This document shows, piece by piece, positions 12,798-19,264 of a DNA stretch of 64,000 nt. The first letter of the stretch is position 1, and every line of letters begins with the position of its first letter. Where the stretch lies: the NCBI GenBank assembly GCA_004431415.1, contig QPMI01000687.1:1-64000 (forward strand). The letters run 5' to 3'. The DNA comes from Cyanophora paradoxa CCMP329 (Eukaryota > Plantae > Glaucophyta). The notes beneath the pieces were generated by a model. That model was given only the letters and a program-made list of their open reading frames with translations, was not told the DNA's origin and made no database searches. Position numbers and translations under genes: made by a program.

Positions 12798-14489
12798 ATG
12801 GTGCGAGCTGCCACTGAATGAATCATAGCCTGCACAAGGCGTGCACGCTGTGGCGCCCGTCGTGGCACGTTTGAGGCGCGCTCATTTGTGAGCCCGCGCA
12901 CGCAGTTCGGGGGTATCTTCGGCGGCGGCGGGAACCCGTTCGGAGGGCCGATGGGAGGCTACGGTGGCGGCTACGCGGCTGGCGGCGTGTTCTCCCACCA
13001 GTACCGCGTCTACCCTGTCGTTATGATCGACAAGCCGCAGTGCGTCATTGCTGCCGCGCAACTCTGCCGGCCTCGAGCTGACTGCCGCACGTCGCCTGGC
13101 AGCCTTGAGAACGGAGACAAGAGTGCGCGCTTCGGGAGCTGGTCGACCACTTAGCTGACCCGCTGCTGACCCATCCTCGCGCTCGCAGTCATCATGCCGC
13201 CGTCGGCGCTGGACATGCTGGGTGCGGGGGCCGCGCGAGGCGGGCGCGGGGGCGTGCGCTGACGGGCGGGGCGCAGCGCACCTGCACATCAGCTACCCGA
13301 TGCTTTTCGAGCTGACGAACCCGAAGCAGCCCGGGCGGAAGACGCACAGCGGCGTGCTCGAATTCGTCGCCGACGAGGGCGTCGTCTACCTCCCCTACTG
13401 GGTGCGCCCGGGCTACGACCGCGCGGGCCGGGGCGGCAAGGCGGTTGACGGGCGGGACAGATGATGCAGAACCTGCTGCTGGAGGAGGGGGCGATCATCA
13501 ACATCAAGAGCGCGACGCTGCCGAAGGGCACCTTCGTGAAGTTCCAGCCCCAGACCAAGGACTTCCTCGACATCGCCAACCCCAAGGCGGTGTACGCGCG
13601 CCCCGGCCCGCCCCGGCGCGGCGGCGGCGGGGCGTGGGTGCGAGCGGTGCGCAGGCTGGAGACGACGCTGCGGCACTTCTCGGCGCTGACGAAGGGGGAC
13701 ACGGTGCGCCTGAACTACAACAACAAGGTCTTCAACCTCGACGTCCTCGAGACGAAGCCCCGCGACGCCATCTCCCTCATCGAGACCGACATCATCGTCC
13801 GCCGCCCCGCCCCGCCCTGCCCCGCCCGCCCGCCCGCCCGACACCGGCCGGCCAGGTCGACTTCGCGCCGCCCCTCGACTACGTCGAGCCGCCCCGCCCC
13901 GCGCCGGCCCCCGCCGCCTCGACCTCCCCGCCCCCGCCGGCGGCCTCATCTTCGGCTCCTCCGCACCCTCCCCAGCCGCCGCTGCCGCCGCCGCCCGTGC
14001 GCCCCGCCCGCCCGCCCTCGGGCCCCGGCGGGCGGGATGCGACGGGCGGGGGCCTGGCGCGCAGGGGCGGCGAAGGCGGCGAAGAAGGAGGAGTCGGAGG
14101 AGGAGGAGGAGGAGAAGCCCAAGTTCGTCCCCTTCTCCGGCAGGTGCCCCCGCCCCGCCCCGCCCCGCCCCGCCTGCCCTCCCCCCTCGCCTGAGGCCTG
14201 CGCAGCGGGCAGCGTCTGGACGGGAAGCCGCCGCGGGGCCCTCGGCGCCGGCCAAGTCGTCCTCGCCGGCGGCCCGGCGGCGGCGGCCACGCCGGTGGCC
14301 TCGGGGAGCGGCGCGGCGGCCGCGGCCGCGCTGCAGCGGGCGGCGAGCTTCGGGCAGCGCTCCACGACGCCGCACCTGAGCTTCAAGAAGAGCAAGGACG
14401 ACGATTCGGGCGAGGAGGACGAGGAGGACGAGGGATCCAAGCCCAAGTTCAAGCCCTTCGCAGGCAAGGGCTACTCCCTCAAGGGCTAG
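12798..14489 (+). CDS. UFD1: Ubiquitin fusion degradation protein 1 (p97/Cdc48 cofactor), multi-exon
   Basis: Motifs [88 protein letters not shown] and VDFAPPLDY, plus SHP-box [11 protein letters not shown]. The first coding exon is the ATG alone (intron 12801-12905). Confidence 0.95.
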
Positions 14490-14722
14490 GCGCCCCCTTG
14501 AGCCCCCGCCCGATCTCCGAATGTTGTACAGTAGAAGTCCTTGCCATCCCGGCGCAGCGTGCCCGCGACCCGGCTGCAGCAACTGTCCCGCGCAGCCAAA
14601 TCACGGTTGCAGCTCAAAGCTGCATCAGATTGGCCGGGCGTGGGTTGGACGGGGCTGGACTTCAGGCTTAATTATAAGCTTCGAATTCGATTTGCACTCT
14701 CGGTTAAGGTCACTGAGTCAGA

Positions 14723-14978
14723 TCGTGAGCATGGTATGATCATGAGCAAGCACGCCGAGGCTCTCGGGGCTTTACCCTTCGCGAGGACGCAGGGGTCCGA
14801 GGACTAGAGCACACAGACGGAGAAGGTCGTGCCTGAAATCCATGTAAAACTGAAATTTGCAATCTCGGCATACATCGTGATCATGGTATGAGCAAGCACG
14901 CCGAGGCTCTCGGGGCCCCATCGGACGCAGGGGACCGAGGACTGGAGCACACAGAGGGAGTGGGTCTGGCCTGAAAAC
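14723..14978. repeat. Diverged tandem duplication (~110-125 bp, two copies)
   Basis: Shared tcgtga.catggtatga...gcaagcacgccgaggctctcggggc...ggacgcagggg.ccgaggact.gagcacacaga...gcctgaaa at ~14723-14838 and ~14875-14977. Confidence 0.8.
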
Positions 14979-14996
14979 TGATATCATATCAATCGA

Positions 14997-15730
14997 TCAA
15001 TTAGTCCAGCCTAGTCGAGCTCGTATCTTGGATAGGGAGGGAAGGAAACGTCCTCGGCGGGTTGGGAGAATGGGAGCGCTACGATCTGCCGTTCTACGTG
15101 TCCGCGTCGAAGATGAGCTGCTTTGGGGGCCGCAGAGGCGCCGGATCGGCGAGGAGCCGACTCCCTGCACTCCGCATGCTGGGCATCGAGGGTCACAACG
15201 TGCCAGGAGATGCATAATTCGACGCACTCCACGCACCAGCTCTTGCATCTTGCAAAGCGCGGCGAGCGGACGGGATCGTCGCGATCGGACCCGCCTCCAA
15301 AGCCGCGAAGCGCTCCAGGGGTCGCCGGCGACGCGCTGCGCGGTCAGCACGATGGGAGGGAATCGGCGCGCGCGCTTTTTCTTTGTTTGGAAAGAGGGAG
15401 TCGGCCGGAGCAGTAACCCCCGTTGTGTTTCACGGGCGCAGAGCGCCAGCGAGCACACATGACTCTGATTCTCATGAGCAGCTCGAATCGAGGCCACGGA
15501 GGGGCTCTTCGCCACGGGCAAGCCCGCGAGCGCGTCTTCGCCCTGCAGCTCGAAACGAGGGTCCGCCCGCCTGGGGTCGGCACTTTCTGCCCTGGGATGC
15601 GGGGAATTTCCCTACGGCGCCTGAAACCTCGCAGAGCGGGTTTCCGTGTGTGCAGCCGCATGCGTGTGCTTGCTCCGACCGACTGAGGCTCGTACCCAGA
15701 CCCGACCGACCTGACCCCCCCCTCCGTCGG
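14997..15730 (-). other. Putative spliced non-coding host transcript of the MRP RNA (introns 15695-15336 and 15236-15165)
   Basis: Donor G|GTACGA 11 nt upstream of the MRP 5' end. Branch GCTGAC (15348-15343) and acceptor CGCGCAG downstream of it. A second typical intron GTGCGT...GTGCAG follows. Only a short unrecognisable ORF results after splicing. Transcript ends are approximate. Confidence 0.5.
15399..15684 (-). ncRNA. RMRP: RNase MRP RNA (~286 nt)
   Basis: All on the minus strand. P1: AGTCGGTCGGAGCA / TGCTCCGGCCGACT. P2: AGCACACG / TGTGTGCT. P3: TGCGGC..GAAACC..GGTTTC..GCCGTA with internal loop. CR-I: GGGAAATTCCCC (15612-15601). MRP-diagnostic P8 GGCA-GAAAG-TGCC with GARAR loop (15591-15579). 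CR-IV: AGTCA. CR-V: ACAACGGGGGTTAC (15426-15413), which can form the P4 pseudoknot with CR-I. Confidence 0.92.
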
Positions 15731-15749
15731 CACCCGACCCGCCGCGAGG

Positions 15750-18700
15750 ATGGACGACGATAGCGCGATAGTCCGATGGGTGCGCTGGGGCATCCCGTGC
15801 AGGGCGAGCGCCGCTGAGCGGGGCCGCAGGTGGGCACGTTCGACGGGCTCTCGCGGCCGTGCGTGCAGCTGCAAGATCTCTCTGATGGCCAGCTCTTCTC
15901 GGAGATGCTGTTCCAGATGTGCGCCACGCGGCGACGCCGAGCGGTTTCGAACGAGCGCTGACTAGCGTGGCCGGCGCAGCTCGCCGCAGCATTTCCCGGC
16001 GCCGCAGGGCCCGCTTTCGGACCCTCGCAAGCAGCTGCATCTGGTCACTGAGCTCGCTCACGCGCTCCAGGCATACTACCGAGACGTGCGCCGACCCTCC
16101 GAACCTGCGGCGCCGCCCGCGCCTCGATGCAACTGGCCGCCGCCATTGTATACGCTCAGCGTGCTCACGTGGCGTGCATCAGGTGCTCGGCGTCCCCGTG
16201 AACCTGGAGAACATCGACCTGCCGCAGGCGGTCAAGGGGGACGCTGCGGAGATCTTGAAGCTAGCGGAGCTGACGCTCGGATGCGCGGTGCAGTGCGAGA
16301 ACAAGGCGCAGGTGAGCATCTGCTCGCGCGGCAACGGCCGCCAGCGCTCGGCGAGCCAGCAGCGCCTCACCCCCGCTCAGTACGTCACGGCGATGATGAG
16401 CCAGGACTCGGAGACGCAGGCGCAGCTCATGATCATGATCGAGGGCATCATCAACGGAACGTCGGCCGTGCTGGCTCCCTCTTCCCCGAGCAAGCCGCGC
16501 GCCAGGTCGACGCGGCGCTGCGCTCCGCGTGCGCTGCGCGTCACTCGTGCCGCAGCGAGGCCGTGGGCGAGGGCGCGGGGCGCTCGGCGGCGGACATCGC
16601 GGAGCTGGAGCGGCTGCGGGTCGAGAACACGCGCCTGCTCAACGAGCTGGAGGCGATCCGCGCCGACCACGTGCGCCGCCAGCTGCGCGGGCCGCCGGCG
16701 GGGCGCTGAGCGGCGGCGGCAGCAATCGACGATGGAGGAGCACAAGCAGGCGCTGGCGAAGGTGGCGGAGGAGCGGGCGGAGTGGAACAAGCTGCTCGCC
16801 AACCAGAAGGCCGAGATCGACCGCATCAAGAAGTCCTGGTGCGGGGCGCGGCGGCGCTCCTTTTTCCTCCTTTGCCGACGGGCAGGGCAGCGCGATGGCG
16901 GAGTCGCAGAGCCAGGAGTACCGGACGGAGGCGGCGGAGAAGGACCGCCAGATCGCCGACCTGAAGCAGAAGGCGCGCCCCGCGGCTCCGGCGCCGGGGC
17001 GCGCTGGCGCTGAGCGGGTGCAGGCGGGGGAGCTGGGGCGGGCGGAGAAGGAGCGGCGGGCGCTGCAGGACGAGCTGGACGTGACGAAGGCGAAGCTGGC
17101 GCAGGCGGGGCGCGACGAGGCCGCCCTCGAGAAGTACAAGAAGCTCGCCCAGGGCGCCGCCGACCTCAAGAAGCAGCTCAAGGCCCGCCCCGCCCGCCCC
17201 GCCCGCCCCTTCCCCGCGGGGCGAGCGGGGCGCGGGGGCGCAGACGACGGAGGAGCAGCTGAACGGGTACATCGAGAAGAACCTGGACCAGGAGGAGCAG
17301 CTGAAGAAGATCGGGGCGCTGAAGGGGCAGGTGGAGAGCTACAAGCAGCAGGTGGTGGCGGCCGAGGAGCGGGCGGCGGAGCTGCAGGTGGCGCTCCAGA
17401 AGAAGGAGTTCGAGGCGGGGCGGCTGCAGGAGGCGCTCAAGGCGGCGACGGGCGAGCGCGCGGCCGCGCAGGGCGAGCTCGAGGGCCTCCGCGCCCGCCT
17501 CGCCTCCCTCCAGGCCGCCCCCGCCGGCCCGCCCCCGGCCCCCGCCCCCCCCGCCCCCGCGCCCCGCTGACGAGCCCCGCAGCCGGCGAGGGGGGCGGGC
17601 TGGAGGAGGGCCTGCTGGGGGGCATGAGCGTGGAGACGCGGGAGAAGATGGCGCGGCTGGAGCGGGAGGTGGCGGCCTTGCGGGGGGCGGGCCCCGAGGC
17701 CGAGAAGCTCGCCCTCCTCGAGAGCCAGCTCGACGACGCCCTCCGCCTCAAGGCCCCCGCCCCCGCCCCGCCCCGCCCCCCGCGAGGCCCCGCTGAGGGG
17801 CGCGCGCAGGGGAAGTTCGAGCAGGAGCACCTGCGCGCGAGCGGGCGGCTGCTGCAGCTCGAGGCCGACGTGGCGGACCTGCAGCAGAAGCTCGCCCGCG
17901 CCGAGGCCGAGCTCGCCTCCCGCCCCTCGTCCGCACCCCCCGCCCCGCCCCGGCCCGCCCCGGGCGCTGAGCCGGCGCAGGGAGGCGGCGGCGGCGTCGC
18001 GGGCGCTGGAGGCGGAGAAGGGGCGGGTGGCGGAGCTGGAGCGGGCGCTGGAGGAAGCGCGGGGGGAGCTGCAGCGCGCCTCCTCGGCGGCGCACGGGGC
18101 GAGCAAGGAGGCGGCGGAGCGGCTGCAGGCGGAGGGCGAGAAGCTGGCGGCGAGCGTGGAGAAACTGACGGAGGAGGTGGAGCGGGAGCGGGAGGAGAAG
18201 GAGCGGGCACGGGAGGAGGCGCGGCGGCACATGGAGGAGGTCGCCCGCGCCCTCCGCGACAAGGACGAGGTCCGCGAGCAGTACATGAAGCTCCGCGAGC
18301 AGGCCCGCCCCGCCACCCCGCGCCCCGCCCCGCCCCCGACCCCGACGCACGCTGACGCGGGGCGCAGATCCACGTGCAGGACAGGACTGTCGCGTGCGCG
18401 GGGCGGGGGCGGGCGGGGTGGCGGGGCGGCCTCTGAGGGGGTGGGGCGGGGCGCGGGGCGCAGGGAGCAGGAGTCGGCGCTCTCGTACAAGACGGCGGAG
18501 CTGCGGCGGCTCGGGGAGGAGAACGTCTCGCTCACGGCGATCGCCAAGGCGGGGCAGGAGCAGCTCGCCGGCCTGCAGGAGCAGCTCGCCAAGGCGGAGA
18601 AGCGCGTCTACGAGGCGCAGCTGGGGCGGGAGCAGGCGGAGTCGCGGGCGCGGGAGGGGACGCGGGCGCTGGAGGAGAAGCTGGTGAAGTCGGGGCACGA

Positions 18701-19264
18701 GATCGCGAACCTGATGGCGGACAAGTCGCGCCTCGAGGCGTACATGAAGCAGGCGAAGCAGGTGATCGCCAAGCAGCAGGAGGACTGGAAGGCCCGCCAG
18801 AAGGAGGCCCGCGGCCGCGAGCTCGAGGCCCGCCCCCCGCCCGCCCCTCCCCGGCCCCGCCCCCCGCCCCTGAGGCGGGGCGGGGGCGCAGCGGTACGAG
18901 GGGCAGGTGGAGGGCCTGCGGGAGCAGCTCCGCGAGAAGGAGGCCGCCCTCGAGCAGCTCAAGGCCCGTCCCCGCTCGCCCGCCCGCCCGGGGCGCGGGG
19001 CGAGACGGGGCGGGGCGGGGCGCAGCGGACGCGGGAGGAGGAGCGGGCGGCGATCAAGCGGGAGAACAAGCTCGTGATGACCGCCTTCTACGAGATGGGC
19101 TTCGACCTTATGAAGGCACGCCCCCCTCGCCCGCGCCGCGCCCTGCCGGCGGGGCCCTCTGAGTGGGCGGGGCGGGAGCGCAGATGCGGGCGATGCCGCA
19201 GATGTTCAGGCAGGTCGCCACCTCGCCCCTCGGCCGCCTCCGCCAGCACGTCACCGGCAGCTAG
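15750..19264 (+). CDS. HOOK: Hook-family microtubule/dynein adaptor coiled-coil protein, multi-exon
   Basis: N-terminal Hook domain: WVGTF..LQDLSDGQLFSEMLFQI and EILKLAELTLGCAVQCENKAQYVTAMMSQDSETQAQLM. Long coiled coil. C-terminal Hook motif KRENKLVMTAFYEMG. Confidence 0.88.

Follow-up and report, generated by a model that had tools for sequence, protein, structure and literature searches.

The window analysed here, a 64-kb stretch of Cyanophora DNA, is very GC-rich and has introns of 50–100 nt. It carries a DapF-like gene with the N-terminus MAF, and an MAF N-terminus is a transit-peptide trait of glaucophytes and red algae. Searching the window with Rfam covariance models matched a single family, RNase MRP RNA (RF00030), on the minus strand at 15684–15400. 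The match scores 71.3 bits, where the gathering threshold is 50 bits, with E 8.5e-18, and it aligns to model positions 1–266, which is the whole model. No other snRNA gene and no tRNA gene was found in the 64 kb by the Rfam and tRNA searches, and between 14450 and 15800 no further Rfam family appeared at a cut-off of E 10. The RNA is 285–286 nt long (15399–15684), and its fold has a z of −2.9. Its closing helix P1 is formed by 15673–15684 and the partner strand 15410–15399, with 12 of 12 positions paired and one G-U among them on inspection of the fold. The P4 pseudoknot is also present, its 5′ strand lying in CR-I (15601–15611) and its 3′ strand in CR-V (15412–15428), and the CR-I and CR-V columns were almost invariant when compared with three other MRP RNAs. 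CR-IV (AGAGTCA) is found at 15460–15466 by the Rfam alignment and by motif, as are CR-I and CR-V and the helix P8 (15579–15591). A GARAR loop on P8 is the signature that separates MRP from RNase P RNA (PMC4287351), and the P8 loop here, GAAAG at 15587–15583, fits it. The complete MRP fold at 15684–15399 that a first-pass annotation of this DNA had claimed is thus borne out, with P1, CR-I, P8, CR-IV and CR-V all confirmed. The locus at 15684–15400 is a genuine RNase MRP RNA gene, and judged by sequence and fold its product is ordinary and probably functional, with a predicted mature RNA of ~285 nt.

To place this gene among transcribed sequences we turned to public sequencing data. Twenty runs of one organism cover the stretch, all as assembled contigs and with library types absent from the record; we aligned four of them to 13400–16900 at a threshold of 1%, of which three belong to separate named studies and the fourth gives no study name. 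Such contigs carry no information on strand, cap, poly(A), true 5′ ends or single molecules, minor forms drop out of them, and one contig need not equal one transcript. Run X15 is unspliced across 14362–16556 and behaves as DNA; its contig is unbroken, and no near-identical second MRP copy was found in the window. Runs X1 and X2 are RNA, as one intron of a UFD1 gene and six introns of a Hook-family gene are spliced in them as GT-AG joints. The UFD1 gene, of which the 3′ part lies at 13461–14686 on the plus strand (Pfam UFD1_N2, E 6.9e-07), converges on the MRP gene, and its RNA contigs end by 14686. Its C-rich intron stretches at 13796–13853 and 13964–14188 are masked as repeats, which leaves two UFD1 introns outside the contig comparison; one-base insertions at 13925, 14232 and 14272 stem from repeat-prone alignments. 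The Hook gene, absent from the first-pass annotation, lies on the other side of the MRP gene and diverges from it (5′ part at 15708–16670, plus strand; ATG at 15750; six RNA-shown introns). Pfam HOOK_N matches its exon at 16183–16311 (E 5.8e-05), and removing the RNA-shown introns leaves 236 stop-free codons with a GC3 of 0.91. Further into the gene, several introns within 16973–19183 apparently use GC donors, each after AG, as predicted from branch motifs rather than from RNA.

On the MRP side, X1 and X2 each contain one contig, and both contigs are spliced downstream of the RNA. The X1 contig (record 3) joins 14843–15178 to 15237–15670, and the X2 contig (record 20) joins 14840–15178 to 15237–15683. 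The observed first exon, 15237–15683 on the minus strand, thus consists of MRP followed by a 163-nt trailer; it is followed by a 58-nt GT-AG intron at 15179–15236 (CT..AC on the plus strand) and by a last exon at 14840–15178. In the third study, X18 contributes an unbroken piece (record 17, 15290–15515) that spans the MRP 3′ end. The three studies also agree on where the contigs stop at the 3′ side, at 14840 (X2), 14843 (X1) and 14844 (X18). The spliced RNA therefore measures ~787–790 nt, of which ~500 nt come after P1, and RNA that continues past the mature MRP 3′ end and has undergone spliceosomal splicing is present in MRP-bearing contigs. The 15178–15237 joint is missing from the DNA-like X15, and we rejected a DNA artefact as its source. 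The annotation had placed an intron at 15236–15165: both its donor at 15236 and the fact of splicing held, but the acceptor at 15165 did not, as the contigs join 15237 to 15178 instead of to 15164.

The trailer is apparently non-coding. The only spliced ORF starting in it has 59 codons (ATG at 15248), with a GC3 of 0.62 against 0.91–1.0 in the neighbouring genes and no codon-position bias. We searched this ORF exon by exon, and its exon-2 part returned no homologue among proteins of similar length and no Pfam match. A protein gene in the trailer is therefore unlikely, in keeping with the earlier statement that the spliced exons encode nothing recognisable. The 3′ end of the transcript lies in a repeat: 14722–14976 comprises two diverged tandem copies of ~140 nt, 80% alike, one within the transcript and one beyond it, each folding into a long hairpin that ATACCA follows on the minus strand. 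The X2 contig end at 14840 falls 3 nt past an ACA, an arrangement that is faintly H/ACA-like, with a weak second hairpin. We considered snoRNAs in these repeats and found no support for them, given a weak 3′ hairpin and no Rfam match to E 10.

At the other end, the MRP-side contigs start at 15683 (X2) and 15670 (X1), matching the MRP 5′ end, while those of Hook start at 15708 (X2) and 15718 (X1). Depth in the bin 15623–15739 (68.4 and 45.9) is reproduced exactly by these two contigs alone, and in X2, the deeper run, no contig covers 15684–15707, so MRP appears to form the very start of the RNA. The contig-free gap between the divergent 5′ ends, delimited by bin depths at 15685–15707, is presumably the core of a shared promoter. 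With Hook transcribed divergently from 15708 or earlier, there is hardly any room for a host exon upstream of MRP. The two RNA 5′ ends lie at most 24 nt apart, and only 65 nt separate the MRP 5′ end from the Hook ATG (15685–15750). A candidate shared promoter motif was discarded, its matches elsewhere in the window being C-rich low-complexity stretches that are mostly intron-like.

The first-pass annotation had proposed that the MRP RNA resides in a 360-nt intron, 15336–15695. The motifs behind that proposal are in the sequence: donor-like GTACGA at 15690–15695, 11 nt 5′ of MRP, and branch-like GCTGAC (branch A at 15344) with acceptor-like CGCGCAG at 15336–15348, all on the minus strand. Their use was not seen in the contigs, however. 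A 15696–15335 joint, whose absence the annotation itself had taken as telling against the intron, did not occur at contig level in any of the three RNA runs, though the stretch yielded seven true intron joints. Contigs from all three studies instead run unspliced across the proposed acceptor at 15336, those of X1 and X2 retaining MRP, and neither of the features expected of an intron-encoded RNA, flanking exons joined over MRP and a transcribed upstream exon, was seen in the contigs. The donor and branch motifs match those of this genome, yet the branch A lies only 9 nt from the AG at 15336, as against 12–19 nt in eight RNA-shown introns and 11–28 nt in a set of ~22 introns from the three flanking genes. 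The pairing of motifs is not trivial, since a GTRCG donor in the 30 nt before a site together with a CTGA-branch/GCAG in the 100 nt after it occurs at only ~0.6% of random positions (9% and 3.5–5% for donor and acceptor motifs singly), a figure obtained with windows picked after the fact and on a background that contains real introns. A first exon reaching past ~15738 would have 31-mers in common with the Hook contig and so cause a fork in the assembly graph; no such fork is seen, which disfavours an upstream exon of normal size. Assemblers discard short tips, and a first exon of up to ~42 nt would form such a tip, so a micro-exon is compatible with the contigs. Release of MRP from the 360-nt intron is thus not supported, though not fully refuted, and is now the less likely claim.

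The signals of an independent type-3 Pol III gene are absent as well. Neither a TATA nor an A/T run of at least 4 occurs in the 150 nt upstream of MRP, and P1 is followed directly by only TTT and then a 13-nt A-rich tract (15376–15393, minus strand), the first T4 being at 14977, 423 nt past P1. On both counts, no TATA and nothing longer than TTT after P1, our inspection agrees with the annotation. T4 is rare in this GC-rich window, following within 30 nt of just 2% of random positions, so its lack says only that no terminator has been selected; the T4 criterion is moreover the general Pol III terminator rule, which may not be Cyanophora's own. As a gene, then, the locus matches neither an intron-encoded non-coding RNA (no joint, no upstream exon in the contigs) nor a type-3 Pol III gene (no TATA, no T-run), and in place of an intron host the data show a spliced RNA that starts with MRP and is apparently non-coding. 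The absence of type-3 signals, taken with this spliced minus-strand RNA, makes a Pol II-like route of synthesis likely, splicing alone being no proof of it. The earlier interpretation therefore survives in one half, an MRP RNA carried on a spliced, apparently non-coding RNA of probably Pol II-like origin, and lacks support in the other, release by splicing from an intron, for which no joint was seen in the contigs.

We favour, with moderate confidence, an MRP gene that is independent and probably transcribed by Pol II into a spliced minus-strand precursor that begins with MRP and has its 3′ side trimmed away. A tight divergent promoter common to Hook would fire the MRP unit, with transcription starting where MRP begins or a few nucleotides upstream, so that the 5′ end of the precursor would also be that of mature MRP, presumably capped. 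Transcription would go ~560 nt past P1, there being no Pol III terminator; the 58-nt intron of the trailer would be spliced and the RNA, probably polyadenylated, would end near 14840. If the contigs represent one end-to-end molecule that serves as precursor, the trailer may be removed by cleavage, by exosome or Rex3-type 3′ trimming, or by both, halted by MRP proteins at P1. This last step is modelled on Rex3 acting on yeast MRP (PMC12129344) and on the exosome acting on Drosophila RNase P RNA (PMC6797745). Against such an independent precursor stand the donor- and branch-like motifs, which it leaves without explanation despite their low joint chance of ~0.6%.

Those motifs are what a host with a very short first exon would account for. 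Here an exon of at most ~40 nt, starting between 15696 and ~15738, would precede a 360-nt intron that holds MRP and is spliced slowly; MRP would be freed by splicing, debranching and trimming, and the contigs would represent intron-retaining or 5′-trimmed RNA plus mature MRP. A donor 11 nt before P1 and a strong branch 55 nt after it have the geometry of an intronic snoRNA; a first exon shorter than ~42 nt would have no 31-mer in common with the Hook contig and could be dropped as a tip, and the introns that hold Drosophila RNase P RNA have weak or missing acceptors (PMC6797745). However, the pre-mRNA should reach into 15684–15707, where there is no contig, the shallow X18 assembles the intron-side spacer as readily as exons, the exon would be forced inside the Hook start region, and to these come the missing joint and a branch-to-AG distance below that of all ~22 flanking introns. 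We consider such a host rather unlikely. Another use of the same branch would be spliceosomal first-step cleavage, in which the branch at 15344 would act on a GC donor at 15375 and so cut 24 nt after P1, the too-close AG would block the second step, and the MRP exon would be freed for final trimming. This would account at once for the 9-nt spacing, the missing joint and the strength of the branch motif; GC donors are common at this locus, and fission-yeast telomerase RNA offers a precedent (PMC9564094). Yet all assignable Hook GC donors follow AG and the one at 15375 follows AAA, and its distance to the branch is 31 nt against at least 37 nt in RNA-shown introns, so that we hold this route to be highly improbable.

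The data could also reflect two overlapping RNAs: a short independent MRP, made either by Pol III, ending at or near the TTT, or by Pol II, with a 3′ end of snRNA type, and a spliced RNA that is not its precursor, either read-through or a separate lncRNA from the Hook divergent promoter. MRP is a Pol III transcript in animals (PMC4287351) and has type-3 promoters in plants (PMC1796607, PMC8287931), that of Ostreococcus is uncapped and has a T-run (PMC7671301), and a single contig may combine more than one transcript. But the upstream DNA offers neither a TATA nor an AT-rich element, the nearest downstream T4 is 423 nt away, the two 5′ ends are only ~24 nt apart, and the MRP 3′ end is crossed continuously in three studies, all of which make this account unlikely in our judgement. 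Taking the intron with a micro-exon and cleavage after P1 together, we regard it as possible but doubtful that release of mature MRP depends on the spliceosome at all. Our literature searches turned up neither route for an MRP RNA.

The accepted view is that animals, land plants and green algae make MRP RNA with Pol III and with ready-made ends, yeast being the known Pol II exception. If our reading of an independent precursor is correct, a spliced, mRNA-like MRP precursor in a glaucophyte would represent an independent polymerase switch within Archaeplastida, one that parallels insect RNase P RNA and telomerase RNAs, and it would raise the concrete question of how a trailer of ~500 nt is removed. 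Two essential-looking genes moreover start within ~24 nt of each other at this locus. In the literature, we found no report of an intronic or spliced-precursor MRP, for which a precedent in Candida or elsewhere is possible, and no description of an MRP gene for Cyanophora. A metagenome pattern scan returned three MRP RNA loci, with neighbours unrelated to those of the Cyanophora gene. In Ga0115099_10615283 (L002:33-437), MRP (33–322) and tRNA-Sec (352–437) lie on the same strand 29 nt apart, with no more than a T4 between them, just before tRNA-Sec, possibly forming a eukaryotic MRP-tRNA dicistronic unit. In Ga0308018_10016852 (L001:1500-2040), MRP is head-to-head with a kinase-like gene at ~160 nt and the first T-run comes 51 nt after P1. 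The third (L003:1-2073) places MRP at a contig end directly after a bacterial-looking adenosylhomocysteinase-like gene and is probably a chimeric assembly.

Compared with the RNAs of RF00030, the Cyanophora MRP RNA shows no important difference, sharing the whole fold, P4 motifs, GARAR loop, CR-IV and normal length; it is the gene that stands apart, through its long spliced 3′ trailer. NME1 of S. cerevisiae resembles our reading in being an independent gene, transcribed by Pol II (PMC7277114), whose 3′ end is trimmed by Rex3, but it has a T tract directly following the mature end and only ~7 nt trimmed (PMC12129344), where the Cyanophora RNA, once spliced, still has an extension of ~500 nt. 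The MRP genes of plants, green algae and animals encode the same RNA but are type-3 Pol III genes, with USE/PSE, TATA and T-run (PMC1796607, PMC4287351, PMC7671301), whereas the Cyanophora gene lacks TATA and T-run. The Ostreococcus gene is intergenic and its RNA uncapped and T-terminated (PMC7671301). The Drosophila MRP gene sits inside an intron yet has its own Pol III signals (PMC1796607, PMC4287351), and animal MRP genes keep such signals even where RNase P RNA has moved into introns (PMC4287351). That intronic RNase P RNA of insects and crustaceans, the sister RNA of MRP, has lost its Pol III signals and become Pol II-dependent (PMC4287351, PMC6797745), and in Drosophila its intron has a weak acceptor (PMC6797745), to which the acceptor-like motif beside the Cyanophora MRP RNA may be comparable. 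Its host, however, is protein-coding and its intron demonstrably spliced, whereas in Cyanophora no splicing is seen around MRP and the host is apparently non-coding. The telomerase RNAs TER1 of S. pombe and TER of U. maydis, although different RNAs from MRP, are likewise RNAs of catalytic RNPs that come from a longer, intron-containing Pol II precursor (PMC9564094). In TER1 the RNA stops at a 5′ splice site, and the TER of U. maydis derives from a 3′ UTR (PMC9564094), whereas the Cyanophora MRP RNA lies at the 5′ end of its putative precursor, with the RNA-shown intron starting 163 nt downstream.
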